Positions 8,743 through 45,769 of a stretch of 64,000 bases of DNA are shown piece after piece. This stretch comes from Lepidodermella squamata (Eukaryota; Animalia; Gastrotricha): positions 434,001 through 498,000 of the forward strand of contig JBLDXI010000026.1 in NCBI GenBank assembly GCA_047495785.1. Reading direction: 5' to 3'. The notes beneath the pieces were generated by a model. It searched no databases and was not told where the DNA came from. It saw only the letters and a program-made list of their open reading frames with translations. The position numbers and the translations under genes were made by a program. Each line of letters begins with the position of its first letter. The first letter of the stretch is position 1.

Positions 8743-10638
8743 ATGGACTACAACAGCAACCGTCTCGTGCAGAAACAGAGAGTCACAGTCTACTGCAATG
8801 TTGCAACTTTACATGGCTTTTTGACTTTTTTAATCCATTTCTTTCATAGGTCTGTGGCAAAGTTGTTCCGCCGAGGACGCGATACAACCCGCGGCAGTGT
8901 AGCGCTTGCCAGGTTAACTACGGCACAAATTTGTCACACTATTTTCTCCACTATATGTAAATATTTAGAAATTTTTCACTCGACAATCCGATCGAAGAAA
9001 CGAATTTCAATGCGTCACTGGGAGATTTGACTGCGAAATAAAACCGGAACAATATCGTAACTGTTGCAGTCGTTGCCGGCTGGAAAAATGCTTTGCAGTG
9101 CGTGAACGAAGACGTATGAAATATTTTAATTTGATTACTCTATGGAATGAGCAAATTACATTGCCCAGATATTACGAGGCAGCTTGCTGGGCCTTCTACT
9201 ACTGATACTAGGTTGGATGGTTCGAGCCGCTATACTGCTAGTGAAGAGTCGGCAACATCAAACATTATTCCCGATTATAGCTGGAATTCAACGATACCAA
9301 GCAATCCCGATCTATTTCAATTCAGTGCGGCGGAGAGAGCCACCAACAGGTCAATTATTGGGCTCACGGTCCTGCATGACTTCCATTCGGTAATTTATCG
9401 CTCAATTCTGGGCTCATATTAGTTTCGTCCAGCCTCCAGGCGTCGGTTGCGCAGTTGGAGGGTAAAAGAGGACTAATGCGCGAACCTTAGTCGAAAATTT
9501 TATAAATTTCAAGGCCTCGTGCGGTAATGCCAGCTTTGATTATTTAGATTATTTAGGCGGCTTTTATTCCAAAAGTAATTCAGCGATTCTCTATCGCATC
9601 AGAGATCGCATAGATATAGGGTTCTCGCGATAAATATTAATAGGAACATGTTTTACGCGCATCTTAACTTTCGAGAAGCGAGTACGCGGAAAACTTAAGA
9701 TGCGGGTGAAACTTATTTTTTTCGCGCTCAAAACTAATATGGGCCCGGAATTTATCTGTACTTCCCTTGTTCTTGTCTAACCACTCGTCAAAATTGTTAC
9801 GGACCAAATTCAGTTCCCGCTGCTAAGAAAGAGCGTTCCTTACGATGACGTTACCAAGTTAGCATCAGAATTTTCCAACCTTCACGTCGAGATGTTCAAC
9901 AAAGCCAGCTCAAGATTCGCACAATACATGAAAGGTATATAAGGATAATCTTTTGAGCTGATCAGGCGAATGCCTACTTTTTTCTTGCAGAAGCTTTCGC
10001 CCTTTCTAACAGCGAGTTGGCAGAAATAGCTGCGGTAGGATGGACTTTAGTCGCACATGCTTTCCCATGTCAACCTGGCGATGAAAATCCAATCTCCATC
10101 AGCAAAGCTATCATGCCACAATTTTTGTCTATTTTCCCCGAGTTTGAGGTAAATCATCTGCTCTTCTTATTTCCATTCTGCCTAGTGATCATTGCTTATC
10201 GGATTTTGAATGTGGCATTTCGGCATGATTTTAACATGATTTTAACCTTTTGCAGCCGCTCATTCTTTGGGCAAAGGAGCTTTCACACGTCTTTAGCGAA
10301 TGGCAACCAACAATGCCGGAATTTGCTCTATTCATTTGTTTCCTGTTTTTCAGTGGTAAGTGCTGAGCCGTATTATAGTAATTTATTGTATATCATCCTG
10401 ATGTCTTTCCTACTTAGGATCAAAGACTCCAGCAATGCTTCGACGAGCGGATGTTTTGCAGAAATCCCTCTTAATGCATTACGTTTCTCTAAGAGGAGAC
10501 TGTCAGTGGCAGGACGGGATGAATCACGTCGAAAAGGCAATGACTATCATGAAGCGAGTTGCAGCGTATAGGCCGATATTTGTGAAAAAAGCGGAGGATC
10601 GCTCGAGGCTCTGGTTGCGCAACATCGATTTCTCATGA
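8743..10638 (+). CDS. Divergent nuclear-receptor-like gene, copy A (8 exons)
   Basis: Spliced model MDYNSN...VYCN|VCGKVVPPRTRYNPRQCSACQ|KFFTRQSDRRNEFQCVTGRFDCEIKPEQYRNCCSRCRLEKC..., then LBD-like FAQYMK|EAFALSNSELAEIAAVGW and PTMPEFALFICFLFFS; GT-AG introns at positions shared with paralogs. Confidence 0.85.
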
Positions 10639-10925
10639 ATCTCAGCCGCGTTTCAAACTGCAGCCTAGTTCGATGATAGAAAAGCATACAACATATATTT
10701 AAAAATAAAATTTTCCTATTTTCGATAGGTAATAAGGAGGCCGTGCACAACGGTTTTTCGACTGTGAACCACTGTCCTAGGTTTCATTGCTTTTCACGAA
10801 AACTGATACATTATTCTAGGGTGGCATGGTAGCCATACTGAGACGCCGGCGCTGGTTAAGAACTGGTTAGCTGGTTAGTTAGTTCCAAAGGTCATCGTGG
10901 CAATAAATAGTCTCATTATCAGCAT

Positions 10926-11190
10926 TGGGGATAATTTTCGGTCACATGACTATCGGCTTCGAAAATGTCGATGATCAGTTTGTTCTTCGATAGTTTGAGC
11001 AAAAACATCAGCGCGTAAAGAACGTAAAAATAAACGAGTTCGTCTTTACGCGCTAATCTTTTTGTTCGAAAATGTTGCACCTTAAAGCTGACTTTTACAA
11101 TAATGTCGGCTGTATCGCCTGCAGATAAAGCTGACTTTATGGGATAGAGTTAACTTTATCGATAAAGACGGCTTCGAAAATAACCCCAAA
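10926..11190. mobile_element. MITE-like element with imperfect TIRs and an internal hairpin
   Basis: TTGGGGATAATTTTCG ... CGAAAATAACCCCAA ends; internal inverted repeat CAAAAACATCAGCGCGTAAAGA / TCTTTACGCGCTAATCTTTTTG at about 10995-11070. Confidence 0.5.
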
Positions 11191-11842
11191 TGATAAATCA
11201 ACCGAGATAAGGAGCTTGGCCCTTATAATTTTGCATATTTAGAGCAGTGATGCTGGTGATGCTGCTCTAGTTATTTTTGTTAAGCCACGTGATGCAGTGT
11301 CATCACAGCGTCCCATGCCACTGTTGCCGCTGTTATCGCTCGTTGTATGAGCCAGGCATTGGAGGCTCAACATCTACTACCGGACAACCAGTACTGCGTT
11401 TCGAGAGCCTAGATCGGCGACCGACGTTCCAGTTCGTATCGTTCACCGCGTGCTTCAGGCTCGCTTTAACAAGCGGAAGATGATCGCTATTGGCCTTGAT
11501 GCAAAAGCCTCCTATGATTCGGTTTGGCCAGTTACCCCTGCCGCGTAACCTAAATGGATTACTTCGCGATGGGAAGCTTAAGGCTCGTGGCTCGTGTTGC
11601 CGGTTTTCTCAGCCGGCTGTTCTATGCTTGACAAGATATACCTTTTTGAAATTTTACATTTTTATTAGGTTAATTAATTAATTAATATATTTAATGACCA
11701 TTGATCCCTTTGTTGAGAGCTCGACTTGGAAAATTAAGTGCAAGTATCAAAAAAGTGCGCAGAGAGCCGTTAATATTTCAGTCCGTTTCGTTATAATTTA
11801 TAAGTCAAAACAAAGTAAGGTGAATTATAATAAAATAAATAA

Positions 11843-13050
11843 TCAACAACATATTAAATGTCTATAAACAAGCAGTCTGCAGTCATTGGCGGTGGCGCAG
11901 GCCTTGATTCCACATTCGCAGGTTGGAAAGGTGCCGTTGTAGGTGCTGATATCAACTGGCCGATGTTGGGTGCAATGGAAGTGGATTGGCAGGGTGTTGA
12001 AAAACACTTGCCCGCTGTGGCTGAGACTGGCTGAGACTGGCTTTGCCGTAGTCGATGCGGAATTAGGGAACTTTGAAGGTCGACCTGGCACTTCGAAGAC
12101 GGCTGGGCTCGTTTTTTGGTGAATAATGGCGTCGGGTGCTTCATCAATGACGCACCTGAACATTGGCTTTGCCAGGTGAAGATTTCGTTTATTGCTCAAG
12201 TCTAGCCATTCTAGTTGCTTTCGAAGAGGATCTGCGGCTGCGGAAAAAGGCGCATTCATAATTATGCGGACCGCTCGGTCTTGAAGCCTTTGAAGGCGTT
12301 CGAGGGACGTTTTACAGTGTCACAGTATTGAAGATGAGCGAATACAAGACCGTTGGCATCGCTTTGAGGCACGTGCGATTCAGTCCGTTTTTCGCAGCGA
12401 GTTGCAAAGCAAAAAGGCCCTTGCGCGCCTTACGGCAGGCGGAGTCGATCTGCTCGTGGTGACGTAGCTTGTTGTTCGCCATAGTTGATGTCAGCTGGTG
12501 AAGATGATTGACTATTGATTTTAGTTATTTGTTTTCGCCCTAAGATGTAGCTGGACATAAGGTCCAGTGAGTTTTCGTCGAATCCTGCGCTTCTTAGAGA
12601 TGAAATTATCCCGGCGGGGTTGAGCGTGCCGAAGGCTTTGCTAATATCGATGCTAATCACTGCTACAGTGAAACCCTTATCGATAGCTTGATGCCAGTCG
12701 TTAGACATTTTTGCGAGGCATGTGTCAGTTGAATGTTAGCGGCGGAATTCGAATTGAGCTGAGAAGAGGACTTCGATTCTTGCTATAATAGCAAGATTAG
12801 GAAGAACTTAGATTCGTGAAGGTATTGCTTAATTTGGATGGCTAGACAGCGTTCGAAGGTTCGGAAAAGCGGAGAAAGAATGGATATAGGCCGGTAATTG
12901 CTAATCAGTTCCTTGTCCCCGTCTTTGAAGAGCGGCTTTCCAAATATCGGGAATTCAATTTTCTGCTAACACTTTGTTGCAAATTACACAGACGTGAGGG
13001 GCTAATATCCCGGCAGATGCTTTGAGCACACATTCCGGCCCACCATCGGC
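11843..13050 (-). mobile_element. Degenerate non-LTR retrotransposon (CR1/L2-like LINE) ORF2 fragment
   Basis: Minus-strand RT motifs IPDIWKA, PLFKDGDKELISNYRPISILSPLFRTFERCLA, QFEFRR*HSTDTCL and AVISIDISKAF, followed by a typical LINE C-terminal LQRLQDRAVRII...LEWL; contains stops and frameshifts, and no YADD motif was found. Confidence 0.88.
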
Positions 13051-13947: not shown

Positions 13948-16078
13948 ATGGAAGCTATCGTGAGGCATGCTGCTTGTAAGGTATGATACATCAACTACTT
14001 AAAAATCCTTTTCCATACCTTTCTTTCCAGATTTGCGGGAAGCATGTCATGAAGCGAAAAAATTATTATCCAGGACAATGCTCGGCGTGTCAGGTAAAGG
14101 AAGATGACTCTTCAGAATGGAGCTTTCAACATGTAATGTCCAGAAATTCTTCACACGGCAAGCTTCGAGGCGCTATGAATTTCATTGTCTCACTCGCAGG
14201 AATAATTGCGAAATTCTTCCTGGAAAAACTCGTGGTTGTTGTACTCGCTGCCGTCTTGAAAAGTGCTTCACTTTGCGCTCAAGCCCAGGTAGAATAGCCC
14301 CAGGCGATTACCGTTAAGCAAATTCTGATTTTTTCTTCAGCTTTCAAAACGAGGAGTGAAAAGATTTTAAGAAATGAATCAGAGACTAAAGATCTTGAGA
14401 GAACTGCCAATGTTTGGTCATCAACAATACCAAGCAATCCAGAGATAATCGACCTCGGAATAGCGGAGAAGGCCACTAAAAACTCAGTTATTGGGATAAC
14501 GTTCCTCCACGGCTTTTATGCGGTATGCTCGCAGTCTTTTCCTGTTCTATAATTCAATCTTTTATTGTAACTAATATAGCTTCCGCTGCGAAGAAGGAAT
14601 ATTCCTTACGATGACGTCACAATTTTGGCATCGGAGTTTTCTAACGATCAGATCAGAATCTGCAATGATTCGGCCACAACGTTTGCCCAGTATTTGAAAG
14701 GTACTCGCCAAATTTTGCTAGCTTTGCACCAAAGGATAAGGGAAGGAGAAAAACAGAGATAAGCGCAATACAAATATAAGCTCTCCTGGATGTTTGTTGC
14801 CTGATTGCGTGTTTAACGGCTACGGGCGAGCCTCGACGCTGAGACAAACGAGGGGAAACTAATTTGCATTTTCTTATCAGATAGATTGCGATGTTCTGGA
14901 TTTACCGAATAATTTCTAAATTTTCACCTGGCTGGCTAAGTAGGCAAATCTAAAAAGCCGCCGAATCTTGGGCAATTTGCTATTCCCAAATTTGTGGGTA
15001 TCATATACACATGCATGTACCTAATATTATACAACGATGCTGCGTCGAATTACCGAGGCGCGTCATATGAGTGAGCCTCATTCCAGATTCGGCTATTTTC
15101 GGAAAATTCAGTATGATGACCCGCTACGATTGAAAAAATGTTTTACTCTTGCAGACGCCTTCGGAATTCCTGACCACGAGTGGCCTCAAAACGCCGCGGC
15201 TGGCTGGACTGAAACCGCAATCGCTTTCACGTGCCAACAAGGCGATAACAATCTGCTTTCTATAAACAAAGCCGTCTTTCCTCAATTTCTAGCCATTTTC
15301 CCCGAGTTTGAGGTAAATCTCTTCACCTCCTGATCATAACAATTTCTTTCGCATCCCTGTCCTTATGTAGTGATACAAATTCGATAATGTCATCAATTAA
15401 TGCAAGATTTAGGAAGAGCCATATCGGTAGCGTCGTTGAATAACTCGGATTTAGGCTTGTTTACATCCGTTTGAAAGTGAGAGGTGACAAGTAAAAAGTA
15501 TTTTTCACTTTTGCATCCTAATTCCCGTTGAAAACCCGCTTTTTTACTTGACACCTGTCGCCTTGAAATGGATGTAAACAAGCCTAAATCCGAGTTATTC
15601 AACGACGCTAACGATATATTCAAAAACAATCAACACTCTTCAAAAACTCGTATTTATTGAAGTGGGAATATACCGGCACACTATTTATCTCTTTTGTTTT
15701 TTGTTTGCAGCCTGTCGCTATGTGGGCGCAGGAGCTGTCGCACGTGCTAAATGGCTGGCAACCGACGATGCCCGAATTTTCCCTATTTTTGTGCTACCTT
15801 TGTTTTAGTGGTACGCGCCAAATTGCGGATTACTGCTGACAGATTATTGATTTTCTCCCACAGGATCGAAGACTCGGATTTCAGTTCGATTGTCAAATGT
15901 CTTGCAGAAATCGTTGTTCATGCAATGCGCTGCTTTGCGGAGAGGAATTGGGTGGAAGGACTACGTCGAAAGAGCCATTGCTATCATGGAGCAAGCTGCA
16001 GCGTACAGGCTAACACTTTTTGCGGAAGAAGATCGAGCAAGTTCCTGGGTACGCAACGCCAAGCTATCATTTGGATAA
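13948..16078 (+). CDS. Divergent nuclear-receptor-like gene, copy B
   Basis: MEAIVRHAACK|ICGKHVMKRKNYYPGQCSACQ|KFFTRQASRRYEFHCLTRRNNCEILPGKTRGCCTRCRLEKC; conserved downstream exons (STIPSNP, FAQYLK, FPEFE, PTMPEFSLFLCYLCFSG); ends SWVRNAKLSFG*. Confidence 0.85.
15421..15617. mobile_element. Fold-back (palindromic) MITE in an intron of NR copy B
   Basis: Arms of about 75 bp, including the perfect core TAGCGTCGTTGAATAACTCGGATTTAGGCTTGTTTACATCC and its reverse complement. Confidence 0.8.
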
Positions 16079-17848
16079 TTCCAGAAACTTTCAAGTACGC
16101 AGTTTTTGTGACATTTTTGTAGTGAATAAAGTCTGTTAATTTATTAAATCACTTTATTAAATCACATTAGGCTAAGCTCATTTGAAATGATCCAGTCAGT
16201 CATTCACCGTTAGCAACATAGCGATACTTCAGCTTCCATAGAGCTAGCCTGAGACATGAGACGTACTAGGACGCCGGGGCTTGAATCCTCCTTAACAAAA
16301 ATCTCTGCGTCACGTGCCGGAATACGGTGGAAAAATCAGGTGAAGCTAAATAAATGAATTTTGTGGCAAAATAATTGATGATGCAGACACGGGTTTCAGC
16401 TAATGTCCTGACTCCGACCAGTCAAGTTTTCAAACTGATGTTGATGCGCCCGGAACATAAGTTCTAAATTTAGTCTCCGAAAAAAATAAGAGAAATGAAG
16501 ACCTCGTGGATTATCAGAGCAAGAAGTATCTGCCATCGTCACCGGTCATACGAATTCGTTCGCCTTCATAACAAGAACAGGAATTTAATACGCCTCGCTG
16601 ACTCAACCTTCTTGATGCTTGGGCGCACCTTTGTTCCAAATTTCTATTGTTTTGCTTTTACCTTTGGCTTGTTCACGTCAAGCAACGTCAACGCCAAACA
16701 TGCAGTCATTTTTACACGAAAATCGTCCGTTGATAATATAAAATCGCCGAAACCTTCCCTTGAAATTAGAAGTTCCACATTTTACGTAGGAACTAATTCA
16801 GGCGGAGGCCAAGTATATTATGGGCCTAGAACAGGTTTACAGATCAACTCCCTATTAGGATTATAATCCATCGATGCCCGAATTCGCTTTATTATTCATT
16901 TTCTGTTCCTCAGAGGTAAGAGCTTTCTTGATCAGAAAGTTCTCGAACACTCCTTTTTTCCAGGAAAAAGCGTTTGTGTGACAAAAGCCTAGCTCAACTT
17001 TCAAGACTCTCGAGACTGAAAAATCTATCGCTCTCCTAAATGTCTCAACTGCGCGGGAGGGCAATGAAAGCCATAGTGACAACTATTTCAGTCAAATTTA
17101 AAAATGTTTGAACAACCTTGCTGAAATAACACCCGGTATCTTTGAAACTACTGCAGCTGTCCGAGACTTTTCACAGAGCAGCAATTCAACATGACTATAG
17201 AGAGGCTCTCAATATTTTAAATACGGACAAATCCAGATTTTTGCTGCTGCCGAACAATCGACTCCTTTTCCTTTCTTATTATGTGGTTCAAAGCTTGAAC
17301 ATCATGCAATAATGAAAAAATTTTCAGCTAAGTTGTTCGGTTATGATATTTGGCTTTGATTCATTACTGAAGTTTAAATAAGCAATACCGAAGAGCGACG
17401 GTAATGTTAAATCATCGTCATGAGAAAATGCGAACTTACACCTTAATTGTGAGGCGACTCTAGATAAAGAAGGCAACTCCGCCGGGACACAGGTATGAAA
17501 TTTTAAGATAACGCCACGTCAGTTCGAGTTTTACCCGTTGGGCCTTTTGGAAATACGCCTATTGTTGAAGTGCATTTTTCTTACATTTTATTGTTCTTTT
17601 CGGGGATCCTTGCGCAACATTTCTCTGATGTCATTCAAGCGGGAGTACAGTATCACTTGCTGACTTCATCTAAAAGCTATGACAGTTACTCTTGCAAAGC
17701 ACTAATATCATATGCTGGCGCTTTTTGCATTTAATCATGCGTGCTATATATACGAGTGCAGAAAAATCAATACAGCGATGTCTTGCGAAAGCATAGCTCA
17801 GTTTTTCTCATCAAACAGTAGCTGGAATTATCATTTGAAAGCATTAAC

Positions 17849-19687
17849 ATGAATACCAGCGATGAGCAATTTGCCAAGGAAGATAATTTAGTCATCAACT
17901 GCAATGTAATGATTTTTCATGACCTTTTTGACTTCATGACCTGATTTATTACGTAGATATGCGGCAAAGTTGTCCCGCCGAGAGAGCTATATCATCCTAG
18001 GCAATGTAATGCCTGCCAGGTAAACTTATTCTTTCAACGTTTCCGTTAATAATTGCAAGCATTCACTTAGAAATTTTTCGCTCGACAACGCAAACGAAGG
18101 TTCGAATTTCAATGTATCACTGGGAAATTCAAGTGCGAGATAAATCCTGGAGCAACTCGTAGTTGCTGTACCCGTTGCCGGCTTGAAAAATGTTTCGCGT
18201 TGAGACTAAGAAGATGTAAGGCTTTTTTGATGAATTTAACAGAAAATAATCAGTAGAATTCTTTAGTTTCAAGAAGGAAAAGCGATGATCCTTCGGAAGT
18301 TACCATAAAGGAACCAAATGACGATTTTAGGTCTGAACAAGACATCTCGGTCTCGGCTCTAAATGCTTATTCATATGGCACCTGGCTTTATGCTACTAGT
18401 GTAGGATCTGGGGCTCCCGGTTTTGAAGCTAACATCAGAAATGCAACGATACCTAGCAATCCTGATTTAATCCACTTCAGTAAAGTCGAGAAAGCCACCA
18501 AAAGCTCCATTACTGCGCTCACTTTTCTGCATGATCTGCATTCGGTAATACATCTTCCTATTTCAATTCTCTCAGTCAATTGCCCTTCCTATTAAGCTCC
18601 CGCTGCGGAGACGAAACTTTCCTTATGACGATATCACCCAGCTAGCAACAGACTTTTACACCAGCCAGATTAGGATCTGGAACGAAGCAAGCACCAAATT
18701 TGCAAAATACATGAAAGGTATGAATTTTTCAAAAAATCTGATTTTCCTTTATCAAGTTAAATTTTATTCTCTTGCGCAGATGCTTTCGGAATTTCGAATC
18801 ATGAGGTGATTCAAGCTGTCGCGACGGGCTGGTCTTCAACTGTGCTAGGTTTCACGGCACAAACTGGCAGCGAAAATCCAACACCAATCAATGAAGCTCT
18901 CTTGCCGACATTTCTTGGCGTTTTTCCCGAGTTTGAGGTAAACGCAGTCAATTTGTTTCCTAGTTAGATGCTACACCAGAAAAATATCACCCTAATTTAT
19001 CTACCGAAAGCATGAATTTAGTTTCGGTATCTGAATTCATGCTTTCAGTAGATAAATAACTGTCTTTTTGTGTATGAATTAGGGTGATTTTGGGCATGAA
19101 TTCAGATAAATGTTGAAAATCCATGAATTAGGATACTCACAGGGCCCTAATTGAGGGGATTTCACGAGCTAAAATTCCGATTGTTAATCACCCATATTAG
19201 GGTGAATTTTTTCTGGTGTATGGCATAAATGTCTCATTATTATTTCCGTTTCACGGGTCGAGAAGCTAAGTCTAGTATTATAAATCCACTTCCCTATTTG
19301 CAGCCTTTCGTTAAAATGGCAAAGGAGCTATCACACGTGCTGAGTGCCTGGCAGCCAACGATGCCCGAATGCGCTTTATTCCTCTGTTACCTATTTTTCA
19401 GCGGTATGGATCAAATCCCCGGCTTTCTTTTTTGACCCATCCACTATCAATTCATTTGATACGCAGAATCCTCAATTCCGAGATTGGTTCGACTATCAAA
19501 TTTCTTGCTTAAATCGCTGTTCATGCATTACTTTGCTGTGAGAAGATGGCATCAGCAGCAGGACACAATTCACGTCGAAAGAGCCTTGGCTATCATGCAA
19601 CAAGCCACGGCTTATGGACCGACATTTCTGAAAAAGGCAGAGGCTCACCAATTTCCCTGGGTGCGGATCGTCAAGCCATCCTTATAG
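17849..19687 (+). CDS. Divergent nuclear-receptor-like gene, copy C
   Basis: MNTSDE...INCN|ICGKVVPPRELYHPRQCNACQ|KFFARQRKRRFEFQCITGKFKCEINPGATRSCCTRCRLEKC; LBD-like exons conserved; ends PWVRIVKPSL*. Confidence 0.85.
18974..19218 (+). mobile_element. Complete TA-flanked MITE (Tc1/mariner-type) in an intron of NR copy C
   Basis: TA|CACCAGAAAAATATCACCCTAAT ... ATTAGGGTGAATTTTTTCTGGTG|TA; near-perfect TIRs, TA target duplication and a second copy at 2934. Confidence 0.85.
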
Positions 19688-21247: not shown

Positions 21248-22532
21248 ATGGAAACTGACTTGAAACCAGTTTTGTGTCAGGTAAATTTTTCGAAATTTGA
21301 AATTCGAAAATTTGTATAGCTTTAAATTAAACAGATATGCAGCAAACCTGTCACCAGGCGACAGTACTATTGCCCAAAGCAATGCTCGGCGTGTCAGGTT
21401 ATAACGATTTTACGCATTTAACAATTTCGTGCTTCAAACTTGTAATTTGTAGAAATTCTTCACTCGCCAATCTCCGAGGCGTTTTGAATTCCAGTGTGTC
21501 ACTGGTAAGAATGACTGCAAAATTCCTCCAAAAACTCGCAACGCTTGCACCCGATGCCGTCTTGAAAAGTGCTTTGCTCTCAAGTCAGCAACAAAATATA
21601 GAAATGCTGACGATAACAGGAAATCATCGATACCAAGAGAGCCTGAACTGGCCGATCTCACGATGGCGGAGAGTGCGACCTTTAAATCTATTGTTGGCCT
21701 CACGTTTTTGCACGACTTACATTCGGTAATTCTTTCAACTCCCCAGCCAATTCGCAGTTGCATCTGTCCTCTCAAATTAAGTTGCCGCTGCGAACAAGGG
21801 CTGAACCTTATCAAGACGCAAACAAGTTGGCGTTAGACTTTGCCACCGATCAGTTAAGGGTCTATGGCATAGCAACTGAAAGATTCGCTCAGTACATGAA
21901 AGGTAAACATGCTCAAATTTCCGTAGTGTGATTTTTCGAACACGTTCATCTTACAGAAGCTTTTGCCATTTCAAATCGCGAGCTGGCGCAAGCGGTCGCA
22001 ACAGGGTGCTGGTCAACTGTGCTAGCTTTCACATCCCAACCCGGCGACGAAAGCCCACTGTCAATCAACAAAGCTATTATTCCTCAATGGCTGGCTATTT
22101 TTCCTGAATTCGGGGTAAAGCTGTTGTAATATTGAACGTGTTTAATGCCGCTTACGCAGCCTATCGTTTCGTGGGCGAATGAGCTATCGCACGTGTTGAG
22201 CGACTGGAAAGCGACAATGCCGGAATTAGCTTTATTCCTCTGTTACCTGTTTTTTAGTGGTAAGTTCCTTATTGATGGCCACTCATTCTGTGTCTTTATC
22301 CTGTCATTCTTACGCAGAATGTACGACCCCGGCTATGGTTCGAATATCAGATGTCTTGAAGAAATCGCTGATAATGCATCATGCCGGTTTTAGAAAAGGA
22401 TCTTCAAGTCAGGACGAGAACCATGTCGAAAGAGCCATAGCTGTCATGCAGCAAGCAGCAGCGTACAGGCCGGTATTGTTCAAAAAAGCAGAGGAGCACC
22501 CAATTTCCTGGGTTCACAACTTCGATTCGTAA
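21248..22532 (+). CDS. Divergent nuclear-receptor-like gene, copy D (most compact, no hinge intron)
   Basis: METDLKPVLCQ|ICSKPVTRRQYYCPKQCSACQ|KFFTRQSPRRFEFQCVTGKNDCKIPPKTRNACTRCRLEKCFALKSAT...LTFLHDLHS in one exon; ends SWVHNFDS*. Confidence 0.85.
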
Positions 22533-24642: not shown

Positions 24643-26292
24643 ATGGAAGTCAACCTGGGTCGTGTTTTATGTAAGGTAAATTTCCTTGATTTCAAACAAA
24701 ATGTCTTTTATTATCTGTCAATTCCATCCAGATTTGCGACAAAGCTGTAACAAAAAGGAGGGATTATTTCCCAAATCAATGCGCGGCGTGTGAGGTAAAG
24801 CTGGCGAAAACTGATTAAAAAAGGGAGCATTACAGTGACATCTCTAGAAATTCTTTGGTCGGCAAGCTCTGAGACGTTCTGAAATCCATTGTGTCACTGG
24901 CAGGAATGATTGCAAAATCGTCCCGGGAAAAACTCGCAGATGCTGCACGCGTTGCCGCCTCGAAAAGTGTTTCGCTTATCGTCAAGGTAAAATATTACTG
25001 ATATGGAATGACCTATGGGCTTCTGAATTTGCGTTCCTATTCTGTATATTCGTTATGCGAAGAGAGTATTTTTCCGCCCGAATTTTCGCGTCATCCATGT
25101 GTTTTTTCCTGAGTTTCATCCTTTTTCCTAGGCCTCTTGAACTGTGGAATACAATAGCGCCTATTCTTTTTCGTACACTCTTAACGCTGTTCGTTTAATT
25201 GAAAATTCCTCAGATAAGAGACGTCGGTCGACTGATGCCTCCGGCCAGAGAGTAAGCAGCGATAGCGATGCTTCTAACGATGCTTCTAACGATGCTTCTA
25301 ACGATATTACGACATCTCTCAAAATTGCTGCCTTTAGCAGGAATTCAACGATTCCAAAAACCCCCGATCTTAACCACCTGGCACTGGCGGAAAAAGCTGC
25401 TAAATACTCAACGATTGGGCTCACCTTTCTGCATGACTTGAATTCGGTAATTTAAATCTTTGTTATTCGATTTTAGAGCTCATTCATTGCCCAATTTAGC
25501 TGCCACTGCGACGTCGAAACGTCCCTTATGATGACATCACTCAGCTAGTATCAGAATTCACCACCGGTCAAATCAGGATCTACAACGAAGCGAGCACCAG
25601 CTTTGCTAATTACATGAAAGGTATTAAGATACTGTTGCCGATTCTTGTTCATTCTGATGCCCTTGCAGAAGCTTTTGGAATTTCTCGTCGCGATTTAGCG
25701 GAAGCTGTCGCGACAGGGTGGTCTTCAACTGTGCTAGGTTTCACATCGCAACCCGGCAACGCAAATCCAATGCCAGTTAACGAAGCTCTCTTGCCCCAAT
25801 TTCTCGCCGTTTTCCCTGAGTTCGAGGTAAAAGCCTTCCCACGCCCCAGTAACACAAGAACTCGTGAAAAGCGGTACGAATCGAAATTGTTCTATTCCAT
25901 ATCTTTTCAGCTTGTCGTGATGTGGGGTAAGGAGCTATCACATGTGTTGAACGGTTGGCGGCCGACAATGCCCGAGCACGCTTTATTTCTCTGCTACCTA
26001 TTTTTCAGTGGTAGGCATCTACATCTTTGGGAATTTGTGGTAATTTGTGACGATAATTTTCTTATGCGCAGGATCTTCGACTCCAGCATTGATTCGACTT
26101 TCAAACATCTTGCGAACATGTTTGGCAATGCATTACGCTGCTGCAAGACGTGGATGTCCAGCGCAGGACAAAAACCACGTCGATAGAGCAACTGCTGTTA
26201 TGAAGCAAACCGCAGCGTATAGGCCGATCTTTTTGAAAAAAGCCGACGCCCACCCAACTTCCTGGGTACGGACCGTCAAGCCATCATTATAG
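24643..26292 (+). CDS. Divergent nuclear-receptor-like gene, copy E
   Basis: MEVNLGRVLCK|ICDKAVTKRRDYFPNQCAACE|KFFGRQALRRSEIHCVTGRNDCKIVPGKTRRCCTRCRLEKC; hinge exon boundaries uncertain; LBD-like exons conserved; ends SWVRTVKPSL*. Confidence 0.82.
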
Positions 26293-27284: not shown

Positions 27285-29061
27285 ATGGACCACAGCAGCA
27301 ACTGGCTTGAGCGGAAGCAGAGAGATACAATCTACTGCAATGTTACAACTTTACATGATTTTACATGACATTTCTATTCCATTTCTTTCACAGATCTGTG
27401 GCAAAGTTGTCCCACCGAGAACGAAATACCACCCGCGGCAGTGTAGCGCTTGCCAGGTTAATTACGACGCAACTTTGTCATATTATCTTTCCACTATTTA
27501 TTTAGAAATTTTTCGCTCGCCAATCCGATCGAAGATACGAATTTCAGTGTGTTACTGGAAGATTTGACTGCGTAATATCAACGAAAAAAACTCGTGGCTG
27601 TTGTACGCGTTGCCGGCTGGAAAAGTGCTTTGCAGTGCGCGAACGAAAACGTATGCTATTTTTCGTGATTACTCCTGAAAGAAACAATGAAATTGCCCAG
27701 AATTTGCCACGTCTTCTGCAACTGATTCTAGGTTGGACCAAGATGATTCGGCTCTATATGTCAACCCTGATGGAGAACATTCGGCAACTTCGAAAATTTC
27801 TTTCGATAGCTGGAATTCAATGATACCAAGCAGTCCCGATCTAATCCAATTCAGTGCGGCAGAGAGAGCCACAAAAAACTCAATTATTGGGCTCACAGTC
27901 CTACATGACATGTATTCGGTAATTTATCGTTACTTCCCTTGTTCGTATCTAACAATTTTTACCGACCAAATTTAGTTCCCGTTGCTAAGAAGGAACGATC
28001 CTTACGATGACGTTACCAAGTTGGCATCAGAATTTTCCAACCATCACATTGGGATGTTCAACAAAGCAAGCTCAAGATTTGCACAGTACATGAAAGGTAC
28101 ATTTATTACCAGGCTGCTGATCATAAATGACGTCTGCTTTATTCTTGCAGAAGCTTTCGCCCTGCCTGATGGCGTGTTGGCAGAAACAGTTGCGATAGGA
28201 TGGCCTTTAGTCGCACTTGCTTTCCCATGTCTACCTGGCGATGAAAACCTAATGTGCATCAGCAAAGCTATCATGCCACAATTTCTGTCTATTTTTCCCG
28301 AGTTCGAGGTAAACCTTCTGCCCTTCATTTCAATTATTCGTTGGATATGCACGTTTTGATAATTGATTACTTATCTTCCGAAGTATTGTAGCTTATGGGA
28401 TCCTCGGAGCGGGGGTACCTTTGTGTAGTTTTGGTCCAGTTCGGACCAAAGTATAGGTAACTTGTGGGATTTTCGGGTATTTAATCTCGACCCCTCGAGG
28501 TAACTCTCGAGATATGGTACCCTCTATAAAATCGATCACCAAAATCGGATCATGAATCGGATCGGATGCCTGAATCCTGAATAAAGGCCCAGTTTTTTCT
28601 TGGTTTTCGGATTTTGAAAATATGTCAGCCTGGACTAGTATCTCTGCATGATTTTGACGTTTTGCCCGTTTTGCCCGTTTTGCAGCCTGTCGTTATTTGG
28701 GCGAAGCAGCTTTCAGATGTCTTCAGCGAATGGAAACCGACAATGCCGGAATTTGCTCTGTTCCTTTGCTACCTGTTTTTTAGTGGTAAGCGCTAAGCCG
28801 TAGTGATTCATTGTATGTAACCGCGATTTTTTTCCCAACTCAGCATCTAAGAATCCGGCATTGCTTCGACGATCAGATTTATTGCAGAAATCGCTCATCA
28901 TAAATTACGCTTCTCTAAGAAGAGGCTGTCACTAGCCGGACGAGAATCACGTCGAAAGGGCAATTGCTATAATGGAGCAAGCTGCAGCGTATTGGCCGAC
29001 ATTTTTGAAAAAAGCGGAGGCTCGCTCAAGTCCATGGTTGCGAACCATGGATTTAACATGA
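27285..29061 (+). pseudogene. Nuclear-receptor-like gene, copy F, with an in-frame TAG in the last exon (truncated gene or young pseudogene)
   Basis: Close paralog of copy A (CSACQ P-box). The last exon reads ...RRGCH*PDENHVERAI...PWLRTMDLT*; the TAG at 28933-28935 aligns with TGG in copy A. Confidence 0.75.
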
Positions 29062-33141: not shown

Positions 33142-34871
33142 ATGGACAACAGCGACGGACGAAGAAAAGCCCGAAAACAGAAATCTACAGTCCATTGCAA
33201 CGTATTTTACCTATGGGTGAATTTTTTCAATTAGATCAAATCATTTTTTTTCATGCATAGGTATGTGGCAAAGTTGTCCCGCCTAGAAAAACATACAATC
33301 CTAGGCAATGTGACGCCTGCCAGGTAAGTTATGTCTCATCTCTGTTATAATTATGTCAAGAATTTGTCCAGAAATTTTTCACTCGGCAATCCCACCGAAG
33401 GCTGGAATTTCAATGCATCACTGGAAAGTTCAACTGCGAAATAGAGCCTGGCAAAACTCGAGGCTGTTGTACCCGTTGCCGGCTTGAAAAGTGCATTGCT
33501 TCCCGGCTAAATATTCGTATGTTTGCAGAAAAAAATCAATTAAATTGTTCAGATTATAAAAGACAACTTGGTGAGGCTTCAGGTTCGGAAAATGAGTCAA
33601 ATGACTCTTCTGGGACAGACCAAAGTAATTCGTCGCTAATCGTCAATCCGGATGACCCGTTCCGTCTTAACGCGGTCGAAAAAGTGGCCAGAAACTCTAT
33701 TGTCGGATTAACAATTCTACACGATTTATATTCGGTATGAACTGGTTAGAAAAATTGATGAAATTGTCACAAAAATTATTGCCTTCCAGTTTCCTCTACG
33801 AACACGAAATAAGCCTTACGATGATATCAACATGTTGGCCGTAGACTTTTGCATCCACCATATCAGCATTTTTTACGATTTGAGTTTCAAATTCGCCAAT
33901 TACATGAAAGGTTTGATTTTTTAATTTTTTAAGGATTTCCGTCGAATTATCTGCATTTTTTAGAGGCGTTCTCGTTGTCGGACTCGGATTTTAACGCGGT
34001 TTTGACCACCGGCTGGGCACCGACGGTTTTCATTTTTTCAGCTCTGCCGAGCAACCATTCTGCCATGTCCATCACCGACGCTGTTCTTCCGCAATTTCTA
34101 TCCATTTTCCCAGAATATCAGGTAAATTGTACCAGGTTAAAAAATTGGGCAAAATCTTTGCCCTAATTCTTGGGAGATAAATTGATGATCCAATATTAAT
34201 ATTTAATATTCATATAATTTGGGTTGAAATTGAAATCGTAATTTTTGGTAATAAGAACTGATATATTGCTACCAATTTTCAAATTTATTCCGAATCTCGC
34301 AGTAGGAAATTCGGAATACATTTGGAATAAATTCCTATTTGGAATAAATTCGGAATAAATTTGGAATAAATCGGGGCCGTTTCGGAAATTTTAGGGAATA
34401 ATTCTTAGATTTGCGAAAATATTCAATAAATTGAAATACATAGAATTTAACATAATTTTTAATTTGAATGTTTTGCAGGCGACTATCGATTTCTCAAAGG
34501 ATATTTCGCACATTATCACCTGCTGGGAACCGTCTATGCCTGAATTCGCATTATTACTTAGTTATTTTTCCCTTAGTGGTAAGTAAAACTTCGTTTTTTC
34601 AATGCTATCGAAATTTCCGACTCTGCTTTCAGGAAAAAGTTTTCAGTCTACAAATCCTCGCCTAGCGCAACTTTCAAGGCTGGTTAAGCATTGTCTCGTT
34701 TCCATGCAATATTCAAACTCGCGTAAAAGCTATATCAATCAAATTATAGAAACTATGGGCAATGTGCTAACACTATTTCCGGCAGCTGCTAAGATCACGG
34801 CGGCTCGCCAAGATTTTGCTTTCCCCGAGCAGCAATACAGCATGGTTTTGGAGAAGTTCTCCTCGTATTGA
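33142..34871 (+). CDS. Divergent nuclear-receptor-like gene, copy G
   Basis: MDNSDG...VHCN|VCGKVVPPRKTYNPRQCDACQ|KFFTRQSHRRLEFQCITGKFNCEIEPGKTRGCCTRCRLEKC; FANYMK|EAFSLSDSDFNAVLTTGW; ends YSMVLEKFSSY*. Confidence 0.85.
34308..34372. repeat. Intronic minisatellite of TT(T/C)GGAATAAA units
   Basis: About five 10-11 bp units inside the enlarged intron of NR copy G. Confidence 0.65.
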
Positions 34872-36146: not shown

Positions 36147-36148
36147 TA

Positions 36149-37164: not shown

Positions 37165-38934
37165 ATGGACAACAGCGGCGACGGTGGGCGGAAACAGAAA
37201 GCTACAGTCTATTGCAATGTAATAAATTTGCGTGATTTTTTTCGACTTGAAGTAACCATTTTTCATGCTTAGGTATGCGGCAAAGTTGTCCCGCCTAGGA
37301 AGACATACAATCCGAGGCAATGTGACGCATGCCAGGTAGATTTTCCTCTCATATTCGTCCTTATATTATGTCAAGGATTTTTTCCAGAAATTTTTCGCCC
37401 GGCAATCCCACCGGAGACTCGAATTTCAATGCATCACTGGAAAATTTAACTGCGAGATAGAACCTGGCAAAACTCGCGGCTGTTGTACCCGTTGCCGGCT
37501 TGAAAAATGTATTGCATCTCGGCAAAATATTCGTATGCAAAATATTTTAGCGGAAAACAAATCAATATAGAATTTTTCAGATTTTAAAAAGCAACTTGCC
37601 GATGCTTCAGTTTCGGAAAATGAGCCAACTGAATCTTATGGGGCGGATCAAGATAATTCGAGGGTACTAATCGCCGATCCCGATGACCCGTTCCGCCTTA
37701 ACGCGGTCGAAAAAGTGGCTAGAAACTCTATTGTCGGATTAACAATTCTACACGATTTACATTCGGTATGTACTCGCGTAAAAATTCGATGAAATACAGC
37801 AAAACTTCTTACCTTTTAGTTTCCTTTACGAACACGAAATAAGCCTTACGAAGATGTCAATATGTTGGCCGTAGACTTTTGCATCCACCACGTCAGCATT
37901 TTTTACAATTTGAGTTTCAAATTTGCAAAGTACATGAAAGGTTGGATTTTTTTGCGTGTAAATTTCGTCGAATTATCGGAATTTTTTTAGAGGCATTCTC
38001 GTTGTCGGACTCTGATTTAAACGCGGTTTTGACCACCGGCTGGACACGAACGGCTTTCGTTTTCGCAGCTCTGCCGAGTAACCAATGCGCCATGTCCATC
38101 AGCGACGCTGTTCTACCGCAATTTCTAACCATTTTCCCGGAATATCAGGTAAATGAGACCAATTACCAATTATCAATTGCCAATAATCATCAATAATTTA
38201 GGTTAGATGTTAGAATCTTTGAATATGGGCTTGGGCGAGGATCTTCAAAACCGGAAACGGTATATACAGCGTTCAGTCCCGAGAGGAAAATTAAAAACAT
38301 TATTCATTCATTCATTCGTTGAAATTGGAAATTTTAGGTCGTACATATTAAGAAATGATCTCTTTTTATCTAGATTAAAATTAACTTCCTCTGACCATTG
38401 CAGATGACCAGCTATTTCCGAATAAAATGGGACTGCTTCGGATATTTTTGGAAATAAATTGGCTCAAATATAAAAAGAATTAATTATATAAATAATTACA
38501 CAAATTTAATTCATTTTCAAACTTTAATTTATCTTGCAGGCGATTATGGATCTGTCGAAGGACCTTTCGCACGTGATAAGCTGCTGGAGTCCATCGATGC
38601 CCGAATTCGCCTTATTACTCAGTTATTTGTTCCTCAGCGGTAAGTAGAATTTCGTGATCCCGATGTTTTCTCAAAATTTCCGGCGCTATTTTTAGGGAAA
38701 GGTTTTCGGAGAACAAATCCCAGATTGGCGCAACTTTCTAGACTGGTTAAGCATTCTCTCGTTTCCATGCAATTTTCAAACTCGCGTAAAAGCTGTATCA
38801 ATCAAATTATAGAAATTATGGACGATGTGTTATCGCGTTTTCCGACTGCCGCCAAGATCACGGCTGCTCGCCGAGATTTTGCTTTCCCTGAGAAACAATA
38901 CAGCATGGTTTTGGAGAGGGTTTCCTCGTCTTGA
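37165..38934 (+). CDS. Divergent nuclear-receptor-like gene, copy H (recent tandem duplicate of G)
   Basis: Near-identical exons to G (CDACQ P-box), with similarity extending into the upstream flank; ends YSMVLERVSSS*. Confidence 0.85.
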
Positions 38935-41768: not shown

Positions 41769-41973
41769 AACAAAAATTATCTGCTCAATTAATAAATTAT
41801 GCACCAATTTTATTATACATTTGACAATAAAATAAAAATTTCGAAAAATCCTCCTTAAAAAAGTGGTAATTTTTATTAATAATCAAAAAAATGCGAGAAA
41901 GCAATTAAAGCAGCTGAGCGGATTTTTTATGCTGAATTCCAGTTGAGCTTTGGGCAAGAATAAAATTCCAATT

Positions 41974-42703: not shown

Positions 42704-43039
42704 ATGGCCGCTTTCCTGTATCAATTTGTCCTCATATTAGGAGCGTCGCTGTTGCTGCTGCTAATACCTCGAAGTGAAGCTTCGCCTGTTGTCGAGTCTT
42801 TGAAGACGTTCAGCGCTAATGGTCCGGTGAAGATAGACAGCAAGCACTCGGAGCAACAGCATGGCAATCCGCAGGCGGTGAAAGCGCGCGAGGCGTTCAT
42901 TGAGCGCATCAAATCGCTGCCTGTCTATCGAAATCTCATGCAGAAATGCCTGCAAGTTCAAGCGAAAACCTTCGACTACTGCAACGACGCGATTACGCTG
43001 TACATTTGGGCGACTTTGAAGCACAACACGGACACATGA
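42704..43039 (+). CDS. Small secreted protein SP1 (Y-x6-C-x10-C-x8-W family), intronless
   Basis: 111-aa ORF with a clear signal peptide; C-terminal YRNLMQKCLQVQAKTFDYCNDAITLYIWA matches four other genes in the window. Confidence 0.85.
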   Translation: MAAFLYQFVLILGASLLLLLIPRSEASPVVESLKTFSANGPVKIDSKHSEQQHGNPQAVKAREAFIERIKSLPVYRNLMQKCLQVQAKTFDYCNDAITLYIWATLKHNTDT

Positions 43040-43949
43040 TGGCGTTGCGCTGATCATAATCTCTGATCTGAGAGAATGAGCAATTTAGTCATACATATTT
43101 GCGCTGCAAATTATCAGCTTTCTTATTTATTTAGAGATCAGGAAGGCATAACTTTCAAATAAACGTATTGCGTTTTAAAAAAATGTATTGTTGATTTGCC
43201 TATATCTAACTTGAATTTGGCAGCGAAAGCTAGAAAAACAATTTAGAAAGATTAGAGAATTTTTTTCTTATACTAACGCTTTTTACGACCTTTAATAAAA
43301 ACGCAGCCCGGTCGCATATACTCGAAATTAATTAATTGGGTCATGAGGCATTTGAATATTCATGAGGCGAGGGCGATCTGACTTCTGCCACCCACCTGAT
43401 ACTCATATTTCAAAGCTCACGTGAAGGGATTGCCACTATAGCCCTTTCATAACACTCTCTATATCTAATATTTCAGGAGGGTGTCCAAAAAGCAAATCTC
43501 CGTGCTAAAAAATTGTATAAATCCGGTGGAAACAGATAAAATGTCTTGCTATATTGCTAAATTGCCGAAGAGCTGCGACTTATCCTCCGGCCACTAGAAA
43601 GCTGTGAAAAGATAGCTTAAGTTTGTTTCAAGCTGTTGATGTTTTCAGCAATTCAGAGGTCTAGAGTGAGGTGCTAAATTCATCGAAATTTGACCTATAT
43701 CACACAACCGAAAAGAGTGATTGCGAAAATGCGTTTTGAGAATTGTGGGGAAATTTTATTTTATGAAGAAATTCAAATTTCGGCAGCAAGCGAGCTAGAT
43801 TCTAAGCGTAACAAGGCGGGATCATGGTATTGACCTGCATATCTCGAAGAGACTGCGTCGCAAGCGGTGGAAAAACACAAAAAAAGCGTGCGAACCCCGA
43901 ATAAATGAAACACCGTACTTTTTATTATTCATGCATCAGCGACTCCAAT

Positions 43950-44191
43950 CAGTGTGAGACTTTCAGGGTGGATGGGGGGATCATACCCCCAGCTCGGCCG
44001 GGCCAGACGACAAAAAGAGAATTTATCCCACTGTTTTGTTAATTTTGGAAGGTTCTGGAGCGTGTTTTAGTGGAAAATCTCCGAAATTTTCACGCTTCGC
44101 TCGGTTATTCGCCGAAATGACTAGTCATTTTGGCAAATACACCAAAAATTGTTTACAACCCTGGCAGCTCGGGATCTAAGATCGCACCCTG
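43950..44191. mobile_element. hAT-like MITE with 8-bp target site duplication, just downstream of NR copy I
   Basis: ACTCCAAT duplicated at 43942-43949 and 44192-44199; imperfect TIRs CAGTGTGAGACTTT / AAGATCGCACCCTG. Confidence 0.7.
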
Positions 44192-44234
44192 ACTCCAATA
44201 GTAATTAATTGACTGAATAGAGTAAGTAGTCACT

Positions 44235-45769
44235 TCATTCACTCTCTGAGGGGACTCCGTCGGGAAACCAAGAGCTAGCGCGAGCCTGTGCTTTTCTCAT
44301 AAATATCGGCCTATACGCTGCAGCTTGTTGCATGATGGCAATGGCTCGGTCGACGTGGTTCTCATTTTTCTGCGATGGATTTTGTCTTCCTAAACCAGCG
44401 TGCAACATGATGAGTGAGTTTTGCAAGACATGTGATTGTCGAACAGATGCCGGAATCGAAGATCCTGTGTATAAGACAATCAATCATTATAATGACATGT
44501 GGGCAGATGGGGGTCGATTTGGTATGCGTACCACTGAAAAACAGGTAGCACAGGAATACCGCCAACTCGGGCATTGTTGGTTGCCAGCCAGCCAACACGT
44601 GCGATAGCTGCATCGCCCACATGACGACAGGCTGAGAAAATTACAGACAAATACTTATTAGGATTCATGAATTTTCCCGACATACAGATCACTATGCAGT
44701 AAACAAAACACAAATAAAAATGTTCACCTCAAACTCCGGTAAAACGGTCAGAAATTGTGGCACGATAGCTTTGTTGATCGACATTGGATTTAACTCGCCG
44801 GGTTGGGACGGGAACGCAATCGCGATTAAAGGCCATCCTGTCGCAACAGTTTCTTCCAACGCGCTTTCTGAAATGGCGAAAGCTTCTGCAAGAGTAAAAT
44901 ATTAGGTATTTCGCCTTTATAAATAGTCGAAGCGTAAGTACCTTTCATGTAATGCGAAAATCTTACGCGGGCTTTGTTGTACATTCTGAAGTGATTAGTG
45001 GCGAATTCCTTTTCCAAATTGGTAGGGTCGTCGTAAGGAATATTCCGTGTTCGTAGGGGCAACTAAATTTTCAAAAAGGTGAATCGAAAGCTAAGAATTA
45101 AAACGCGATAAAAAACCGAATATAAGTCGTGCAGAAACGTGAGTCCAATCACTGAATTTTTAGTGGCTGTTTCAGCCAATGTCATGAGTTTGAGATCAGG
45201 ATTGCTTGGTATCGTTGAATTCAGTCTGTGATCAAGGAAGTTTGTCATAAAGGTTATGCGGCAATGTCAGTAAAATGGCTAACTCAGAATGGTTGATCCA
45301 CCCATTTCCACTAGCATCTTCTGAACCTTCTGAAGGCAAGGCGAGTTGCTTTCTGAAGCCTGACAAAGTCTATAGATTTCATTTTGATAAAATAACGAGA
45401 ACATCTACCATACTTGTTCCATGCTTGGCAGCGAAGCATTTTTCAAGCCGACAACGGGTACAACAACCACGCGTTTCTCCCGGTTTTATCTCACAGTTGA
45501 ATTTCCCAGTGACACATTGAAAGTCGTACCTTCGGCATGCTTGTCGAGCGAAAAATTTCTTAATAAATACGGGTAAATTATGGATAAAAGAAATTGTTAA
45601 GACGAAGTTTACCTGACAAGCATTACATTGCCTTGGATGGTATCGCTTTCTAGGCGGAACAACCTTCCCGCATATCTGCGAATGGGAATTATTTAATTAA
45701 TGAAGTCGAAAAAGGCAACGATTTTACATTGCAGTAGATGGCGCGTTTATGTTCTTGTCCATTTTCCAT
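44235..45769 (-). CDS. Divergent nuclear-receptor-like gene, copy I (inverted and separated from the array)
   Basis: MENGQEHKRAIYCN|ICGKVVPPRKRYHPRQCNACQ|KFFARQACRRYDFQCVTGKFNCEIKPGETRGCCTRCRLEKC; same exon pattern; ends SWFPDGVPSESE*. Confidence 0.85.

Follow-up and report, generated by a model that had tools for sequence, protein, structure and literature searches.

Nine tandem genes with a nuclear-receptor DNA-binding domain and a probable, very divergent ligand-binding domain

The 64,000-nucleotide stretch of DNA analysed here (the window) carries a tandem array of zinc-finger genes, which raises the question of whether these genes encode nuclear receptors (NRs) and whether their conserved C-terminal domain is an NR ligand-binding domain (LBD). 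Most animals have 20–50 nuclear receptors. To our knowledge, the nematode NR explosion is the sole textbook exception to these small sets. The supplementary nuclear receptors (supnrs) of nematodes are derived from HNF4, and C. elegans has approximately 280 NR genes.

The tblastn search of the whole window with the exon peptides of copy A showed nine loci, each with the same exons in the same order. The array consists of nine intron-bearing paralogs, A–I (320–361 aa), and one decayed 3′ fragment, and occupies 8743-45769, with A–H on the plus strand and I inverted on the minus strand (Table 1). Nine paralogs and a relic had been reported in the preliminary description; all were recovered, and the ATG positions of the A and I models (8743 and 45769) are exactly the two ends of the array. 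The pairwise protein identity of the nine paralogs was 39–84%, so that the earlier term "highly divergent" is apt. The spliced joins of the gene models were used in aligning the proteins, for dN/dS and the tree, and in hhalign and hmmsearch comparisons with alignments and ORFs, and the queries of the Pfam, PDB, homology, and folding runs were exon pieces, family profiles, or read-through frames. The cluster census showed that the nine window genes are the downstream end of a larger cluster of approximately 22 genes on the same contig. The cluster size was approximately 22–24 genes per haplotype, the other haplotype having two extra copies. In the tree, the paralog branches were long and the allelic branches were short.

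Table 1. Gene models and relic of the array, in window positions; exons are listed from first to last.
Feature	Position	Strand	Number of exons	Product	Exon positions	Remarks
Gene A	8743..10638	+	8	361 aa	8743-8799, 8850-8912, 8969-9113, 9169-9389, 9814-9934, 9991-10148, 10256-10355, 10418-10638	intact; model guided by homology to F; all introns GT..AG
Gene B	13948..16078	+	8	338 aa	13948-13980, 14031-14093, 14144-14288, 14341-14522, 14580-14700, 15155-15312, 15711-15810, 15864-16078	intact
Relic of tenth copy	16859..17173	+			16859-16903 (exon-7-like), 17024-17173 (exon-8-like, with in-frame stop)	decayed 3′ end of G/H type, comprising exons 7 and 8
Gene C	17849..19687	+	8	355 aa	17849-17905, 17957-18019, 18071-18215, 18342-18544, 18597-18717, 18780-18937, 19304-19403, 19467-19687	intact; least certain boundary is the hinge-exon start
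Gene D	21248..22532	+	7	320 aa	21248-21280, 21335-21397, 21453-21725, 21782-21902, 21957-22114, 22160-22259, 22318-22532	intact; without DBD/hinge intron, exons 3 and 4 being fused in a single open frame
Gene E	24643..26292	+	8	355 aa	24643-24675, 24732-24794, 24848-24986, 25214-25446, 25500-25620, 25669-25826, 25911-26010, 26072-26292	intact; P-box CAACEK
Gene F	27285..29061	+	8	359 codons	27285-27341, 27394-27456, 27506-27650, 27701-27918, 27976-28096, 28151-28308, 28686-28785, 28844-29061	transcribed, spliced; nonsense allele in assembly
Gene G	33142..34871	+	8	345 aa	33142-33201, 33261-33323, 33372-33516, 33583-33734, 33790-33910, 33964-34121, 34479-34578, 34633-34871	intact; P-box CDACQK; last exon of different type
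Gene H	37165..38934	+	8	352 aa	37165-37218, 37273-37335, 37388-37532, 37581-37765, 37820-37940, 37991-38148, 38540-38639, 38702-38934	intact on assembled haplotype
Gene I	44235..45769	-	9	341 aa	45728-45769, 45613-45675, 45414-45558, 45302-45359, 45117-45225, 44942-45062, 44728-44885, 44532-44631, 44235-44464	inverted; probably intact with predicted extra 76-nt hinge-exon intron

The DNA-binding domain (DBD) of the family is a nuclear-receptor DBD. The Pfam family zf-C4 matched exon 3 of copy A alone at 22.2 bits (cut-off 21.1), and exon 3 of three other copies scored 15–21 bits (gene B, 20.7 bits); the exon-3 match spans profile positions 26–66 of 70. When the family DBD profile was run against PDB sequences, 52 of the 53 matches were NR DBDs, the best being AncSR1 (1.3e-4), VDR, RAR-beta, and ER. 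The genes were thus rightly described as nuclear-receptor genes with regard to their DBD. The top PDB scores were only approximately 25 bits and were scattered over NR1 and NR3 receptors, with no preference for any NR subfamily, NR2 included, among these matches. This supports the view that the copies are not one-to-one orthologs of any known subfamily.

All of the double-finger motifs quoted earlier (CxxC, KFFxR, and CxRCRLEKC) were found. C-x-x-C is split over exons 1/2, and CSACQ and KFFxR fall on the two sides of the exon 2/3 boundary. The eight zinc-binding cysteines were invariant in the family alignments. The canonical spacing of the NR DBD is C-x2-C-x13-C-x2-C and C-x5-C-x9-C-x2-C (PMC10497141), whereas that of the family is C-x2-C-x14-C-x2-C and C-x6-C-x10-C-x2-C, all three loops being typically one residue longer. 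Over the cluster on both haplotypes, the finger-1 loop had 14 residues in 48/48 copies, the D-box had 6 residues in 50/50 copies, and the loop after the D-box had 10 residues in 41 copies, 9 in 8, and 8 in 1. The lengthening is a variant of the loops of the fold, with the zinc ligands all retained. The recognition-helix motif C-(S/N/H/D/A)-A-C-(Q/E)-K-F-F-x-R was present in every copy and its P-box residues are non-canonical. The first position of the P-box xAC(Q/E)K is S, N, D, or A in the window and H elsewhere in the cluster.

The proteins have an N-terminus of 10–19 residues, the zf-C4 DBD, a variable hinge, which is often acidic, serine-rich, and variable in length, and a conserved C-terminal domain of approximately 230 residues. 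The mean pairwise identity was 65% in the DBD, 19% in the hinge, and 50% in the C-terminal domain. The domain order is that of an NR (A/B, DBD, variable hinge, LBD position), with the NR-type conservation pattern. The C-terminal motifs of the preliminary description were also present. FAxYMK and EAF..GW are split over exons 5/6, which shows that its splicing of FAxYMKEAF was correct, and PTMPEFALFLCYLFFS lies within exon 7.

Hormone_recep (PF00104) was the sole recurring Pfam family for exon 7, with weak matches in 6 of 23 members; exon 7 of copy A matched profile positions 118–143 with an E-value of 0.056. The best PF00104 score of the exon pieces was 13.3 bits versus a cut-off of 23.5, and none of the exons tested matched at the curated cut-off. 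The whole-genome PF00104 scan showed no LBD in the cluster, the per-exon profiles found no NR LBD in the PDB sequences, and hhalign with the read-through alignment recognised nothing (probability <1%).

The spliced family domain was aligned by hhalign with another NR family of this genome, which is single-exon and PF00104-positive (E 0.0046), and with three canonical NRs (E 0.015). Both alignments were collinear over 184–203 columns, with low probabilities of 3–8%. They placed FAxYMKEAF..GW onto the FAKxLPGF..DQ..LL signature and PTMPEFALFL onto the helix-8 motif. The real scores were above 40/40 column shuffles and 40/40 block shuffles; one reversed template scored 25.3 versus the real 28.5. 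With the family HMM, the ORFs of the PF00104-positive single-exon NR family ranked first among non-family ORFs. An AF-2 motif was not evident in the A-type C-terminus. The AlphaFold2 models were made of read-through fragments with intron-coded inserts, and the pLDDT was 55.5 for window positions 25500-26015 (exons 5–7 of gene E and two translated introns) and 40.7 for L004:8108-8716 (exons 6–8 of a paralog on contig C34). The elements in these partial, low-confidence models were mainly helices, and Foldseek and VIA-align found no meaningful fold match for them. For the LBD resemblance claimed earlier, the sequence signals are weak but agree with one another. The C-terminal domain can barely be recognised as an NR LBD from its sequence, which makes this identity probable rather than proven, and the sequence comparisons suggest that the approximately 230 residues are a very divergent NR LBD.

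Relatives of the C-terminal domain were searched outside the genome. Neither the exon-6 frame of copy A nor the read-through frame spanning exons 5 to 7 of copy E matched anything in the word-index homology search. The HMMER search with the exon 5–7 profile against 1.84 billion protein representatives gave four matches, all spurious, and no true LBD relative; three were repeat proteins carrying "AILPQFLTLEPRFV" and the fourth was a CAP-domain repeat protein. The protein-language-model look-alikes of the copy-E fragment were transposase clusters at 0.81, which we regard as noise. The domain is in this sense lineage-specific, as had been proposed; this absence is weak evidence, because the neighbouring conserved gene, an M13 peptidase, also had no relative of >40% identity in the word-index database.

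Even when up to 2 mismatches were allowed, the 121-Mb genome contained no match to the nematode SL1 spliced-leader sequence, although some nematode clades use other leaders. The absence of SL1 speaks against the known nematode case, and the hypothesis of a nematode host was rejected. The family resembles the nematode supnrs in being a large lineage-specific NR burst with tandem clusters, short introns, divergent P-boxes, hard-to-recognise LBDs, and possible metabolite or xenobiotic sensing. It differs from them in its host without SL1, in its P-box xAC(Q/E)K, which is not of the HNF4 type, and in its three longer finger loops. Platyhelminth NRs with a second finger C-x6-C-x9-H-x2-C (cited in PMC10497141) share the six-residue D-box in an otherwise NR-type second finger. 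The family, in contrast, keeps all four cysteines and has the following loop lengthened to ten, and the hosts differ.

Transcription was read from the RNA runs. Six of the seven junctions of gene F were read directly from run X1 contigs, an 852-nt spliced contig of this run covering gene F across four introns, and the junction of gene E between 25826 and 25911 was present in a spliced run X1 contig. Among the nine genes, RNA support was found for gene F and this one junction of E only. Gene F, at least, is transcribed and spliced. The dN/dS of the paralogs was 0.21–0.48 and the pN/pS between haplotypes was 0.21, with all coding indels being multiples of three. The genes are under purifying selection.

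We consider it likely (probability about 0.8) that the nine genes, eight intact and one a nonsense allele, and the relic form a lineage-restricted branch of the NR superfamily whose C-terminal domain is most likely a very divergent LBD. These genes might instead encode NR-type zinc-finger DNA-binding proteins in which the C-terminal domain has no homology with the NR LBD and is a new helical domain that was acquired or has evolved past structural resemblance. It would fit this alternative that none of the searches identified an LBD with significance or above a curated cut-off and that the structure models were uninformative. We regard it as distinctly improbable, since the weak signals all indicate the NR LBD family at the expected collinear positions, and the domain resembles an E domain in its size, in following a variable hinge, and in how its conservation is distributed. 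Another reading concerns only the origin and is compatible with a very divergent LBD: the family may have split off from the two-DBD receptors (2DBD-NR/NR7) with a single DBD that derives from their first one. The first DBD of 2DBD-NRA has the P-box EACKK, and 2DBD receptors have multiplied in rotifers (PMC10497141). In the family P-box, positions 2 and 5 are likewise Ala and Lys, and a 2DBD receptor is encoded in the same genome, where two zf-C4 matches lie in one 640-aa frame (C17:2780674-2781135). The family differs from these receptors in the single DBD of each of the nine gene models and in the 14 residues of the finger-1 loop. Against this origin, the six-residue D-box contrasts with the canonical C-x5-C of most 2DBD-NRs (PMC10497141), and the PDB matches of the DBD favour no subfamily; we think this origin rather unlikely.

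It could also be argued that the array is mostly dead and consists of decaying pseudogenes of an old burst without present function. Codon 28933-28935 of gene F is the stop TAG in the assembly, there is one relic, copy I requires a predicted extra intron, and insertions break single copies on one or the other haplotype. Against this, eight of the nine reading frames are open across 7–9 exons with GT..AG introns, the haplotype differences bear the marks of selection given above, and gene F is spliced and reads TGG at this codon in both runs, X1 and X2, as well as on the other haplotype. An array of pseudogenes is thus extremely unlikely, and this hypothesis was rejected on the purifying selection and the RNA evidence.

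As receptors with a very divergent LBD, the proteins would act as sequence-specific transcription factors. The P-box variation may give the paralogs distinct response elements, and the longer D-box may alter the dimer geometry. The C-terminal domain would retain the LBD fold and serve in ligand or cofactor binding or in dimerisation. By analogy with the nematode receptors, a chemical-sensing role of the family is plausible.

The genome-wide count gave 438 candidate zf-C4 sites in the 121-Mb genome; 150 of these were scored and gave 153 matches, and all matches listed exceed the cut-off. Both in the cluster and across the genome, the expansion exceeds what was described earlier. The 438 zf-C4 candidates compare with only 41 Hormone_recep candidates, and domain scans alone would miss the C-terminal domain in most receptors of this genome, which matters for annotation. 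We tentatively suggest, at somewhat less than even odds, that a non-nematode micro-invertebrate has undergone a second, independent NR expansion near the nematode scale, with roughly one to two hundred genes in the haploid genome, and that the cluster forms one arm of it. The re-engineered DBD, with every zinc-finger loop lengthened and a new P-box series, would then read response elements read by no known receptor, and the fast-evolving LBDs would form a chemosensory repertoire. If true, a second large expansion would allow a test of whether such bursts share rules (such as birth and death in tandem arrays, LBD sequences becoming unrecognisable, and diversifying P-boxes) and of the ecological pressure behind them. 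With its naturally altered zinc-finger geometry (x14, x6, x10), the family is a probe of the loop-length tolerance of the NR DNA-binding fold. The graded P-box series (S/N/H/D/A-A-C-Q/E-K) is suited to DNA-specificity mapping and to studying the evolution of specificity.

Tandem duplications and occasional losses probably shaped the growth of the family. The birth and death postulated earlier is borne out by the relic common to both haplotypes, the nonsense allele of F, the haplotype-specific insertions, and the two additional copies in the other haplotype. The latter carries the broken piece of the relic at L017:4331-4426. The sequence upstream of the relic showed no DBD exons. Genes G and H share 84% identity with a dN/dS of 0.21, and exons 5 and 6 of gene H are approximately 3.6 kb apart on the other haplotype. 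The hinge exon of gene I is frameshifted unless the predicted extra GT..AG intron is removed. Within this stretch, a 3-base and a 2-base indel (net 1) separate the haplotypes, and the GT and AG ends are kept.

The array in the window is real: it is a tandem family of nuclear receptor (NR) genes that is expressed and maintained by selection. The window is animal DNA with a GC content of about 41% and short introns. A tblastn search with the exon peptides of copy A found nine sites with identical exon order, so the nine paralogs (A–I) proposed in the preliminary description were borne out. The decayed tenth copy (the relic) was also recovered, as an exon-7-like and an exon-8-like piece, and the same broken piece is present on the other haplotype. 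The positions 8743 and 45769, described as the ends of the array, are the start codons of the A and I models.

Features of the receptor array and its neighbouring genes in the window
Feature	Position	Strand	Remarks
Copies A–H	8.7–38.9 kb	+	tblastn with copy-A exon peptides
Copy I	45.8–44.2 kb	−	inverted; tblastn with copy-A exon peptides
Relic, exon-7-like piece	16859–16903		isolated; tblastn
Relic, exon-8-like continuation	17024–17173		in-frame stop
Divergent Cys-loop ligand-gated ion-channel subunit	29536–30804	−	single-exon 422-aa ORF, between F and G
M13 (neprilysin/ECE-like) peptidase gene	39267–41768	+	between H and I

The copies were modelled with F as guide; intron phases are shared and borders are GT..AG. 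The usual gene has eight exons and 320–361 codons. Exon 1 is tiny (11–20 codons) and ends in Cys-x; therefore an intron splits the first C-x2-C of the DNA-binding domain (DBD). In copy D, no intron separates the DBD exon from the hinge exon. The copy I model required an additional 76-base GT..AG intron within the hinge exon. Inside this stretch the haplotypes differ by 3- and 2-base indels while its ends are kept, which fits a probable intron. The hinge exon of copy E (25214–25446) carries a short Ser-Asp-Ala-Ser-Asn repeat with a 21-base in-frame indel between haplotypes.

Sequencing run X1 has the character of RNA data. An 852-nt contig from it aligned to copy F in five blocks with GT..AG gaps of 54–377 bases, and two more F junctions and one E junction were seen in this run. 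None of these junctions was present in the DNA-like run X2. Among the nine models, RNA support covers F and one junction of E only. Codon 28933–28935 of copy F is TAG in the assembly, whereas contig C25 and both runs have TGG, which encodes the tryptophan that copies A and B share at that position. This allele-specific stop may mark a null allele that segregates, or else an error in the assembly.

The entire cluster recurs in collinear order on contig C25, with 92–99% nucleotide identity, and we read this second copy as the other haplotype. Eight allelic gene pairs showed 97 synonymous and 71 non-synonymous differences (pN/pS 0.21), all allelic coding indels were multiples of three, and no C25 allele contained a stop codon; therefore the genes are maintained by selection. 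The dN/dS between paralogs was 0.21 for G–H, 0.48 for A–F and 0.22–0.36 for older pairs.

Exon 3 alone matched positions 26–66 of the 70 in the Pfam zf-C4 profile, with 22.2 bits for copy A (cut-off 21.1) and 15–21 bits for three other copies. When the family DBD profile was searched against the PDB (E up to 1), 52 of 53 matches were NR DBDs. They were spread over AncSR1, VDR, RAR, ER, GR, ROR and COUP-TF with almost equal scores, so no NR subfamily is prominent. The canonical NR DBD has the spacing C-x2-C-x13-C-x2-C and C-x5-C-x9-C-x2-C (PMC10497141), whereas the first zinc-finger loop of this family has 14 residues (48/48 copies read), the D-box has 6 (50/50) and the loop after it mostly has 10 (41 copies; 9 residues in 8 copies and 8 in 1). 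An extra cysteine before Cys7 is unconserved in the family and is therefore no ligand. The family has the P-boxes CSACQK, CNACQK, CHACQK, CDACQK and CAACEK.

The C-terminal domain had been described as resembling an NR ligand-binding domain (LBD), and the weak point of this claim is that direct sequence recognition fails. A whole-genome search with the Hormone_recep profile (PF00104) gave 41 candidates, with 0 in the cluster. Per-exon profiles retrieved no NR from the PDB, and an exhaustive HMMER search of 1.84 billion representatives with the exon 5–7 profile returned four spurious repeat proteins only. Two open frames reading through short introns gave poor, mostly helical structure models (pLDDT 55.5 and 40.7) with no structural match. 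Several weak signals nevertheless agree. Hormone_recep was the sole recurring Pfam family in per-exon scans of the domain, with weak exon-7 matches in 6 of 23 members (best E 0.035; profile positions 118–143 in copy A). The results that follow used 29 family members as spliced models. In hhalign, the spliced domain aligned collinearly over 203 columns (E 0.0046) with a family of single-exon NRs from contig C54, several members of which pass PF00104, and over 184 columns (E 0.015) with three canonical NRs that this genome also encodes. FAxYMKEAF..GW fell on the NR signature FAKxLPGF..DQ..LL and PTMPEFALFLCYLF on the helix-8 motif. Both real scores exceeded 40/40 column shuffles and 40/40 block shuffles, but one reversed template came near the real score (25.3 vs 28.5). 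The family HMM ranked the C54 NR ORFs highest among non-family ORFs. Among the nine copies, mean identity falls from 65% in the DBD to 19% in the hinge and rises again to 50% in the C-terminal domain, the classical NR profile. We consider homology of this domain to the NR LBD likely (probability about 0.8); the family combines a remodelled DBD with a probable, highly divergent LBD.

The tandem expansion, first described from nine copies, proved larger. The nine receptor genes form the downstream part of a longer cluster (C26:352–480 kb, on the contig of the window), which counts about 22 genes here and about 24 on the other haplotype. Two cluster copies were found on one haplotype only. Contig C34 holds three further paralogs, and C105 a distant one. 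In the tree, the two alleles of each gene sit together on very short branches and paralogs are 0.15–0.9 changes/site apart, which makes most duplications old. Ongoing birth and death is indicated by the relic common to both haplotypes, the nonsense allele of F, haplotype-specific insertions and the copy-number difference.

Upstream of the window, about 9.3 kb at C26:402050–411407 (loci L023 and L007) splits a family gene between exons 5 and 6 and is missing from C25. About 3.6 kb lies between exons 5 and 6 of the copy H allele at C25:2185340–2188957. At about 3.3 kb, the A–B spacer is longer than those from copy B to copy F (about 1.1–1.8 kb) and may therefore contain a decayed insertion; Pfam (E up to 0.01) matched none of its ORFs at 11843–12708 (−).

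The family is part of a very large NR expansion in a non-nematode. The zf-C4 model gave 438 candidates in the whole genome; 150 of them were scored, yielding 153 matches, and all those listed pass the cut-off. This suggests, as an order of magnitude, one to two hundred NR genes, with the two haplotypes partly represented. About 50 zf-C4 matches form an array of their own at C54:2.52–2.67 Mb (L025–L029), where one large exon per gene holds most of the DBD and the whole LBD. A literature search found no account of a comparable NR expansion outside nematodes. The genome lacks the nematode SL1 leader. We hypothesize that the family members are putative sensors.

The expansion had also been called lineage-specific, and the exon 5–7 search agrees in giving no outside relative. 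The reach of this term is limited by the sampling of relatives, and the databases searched leave out the proteins of this genome. The neighbouring M13 peptidase (Peptidase_M13_N 265 bits, Peptidase_M13 126 bits) is conserved, and a word-index search gave no relative above 40% identity: the best were unnamed metagenome proteins (37–40%), then bird and spider ECE homologs (31–33%). No close relative of L. squamata seems represented in databases, so the NR family may be common to an unsampled clade.

The exact sequence of the channel-subunit ORF was absent from the contig collection; it scored 38 bits with Neur_chan_LBD and 24 bits, below the cut-off, with Neur_chan_memb. Another ORF lies beside copy I at 42704–43039.
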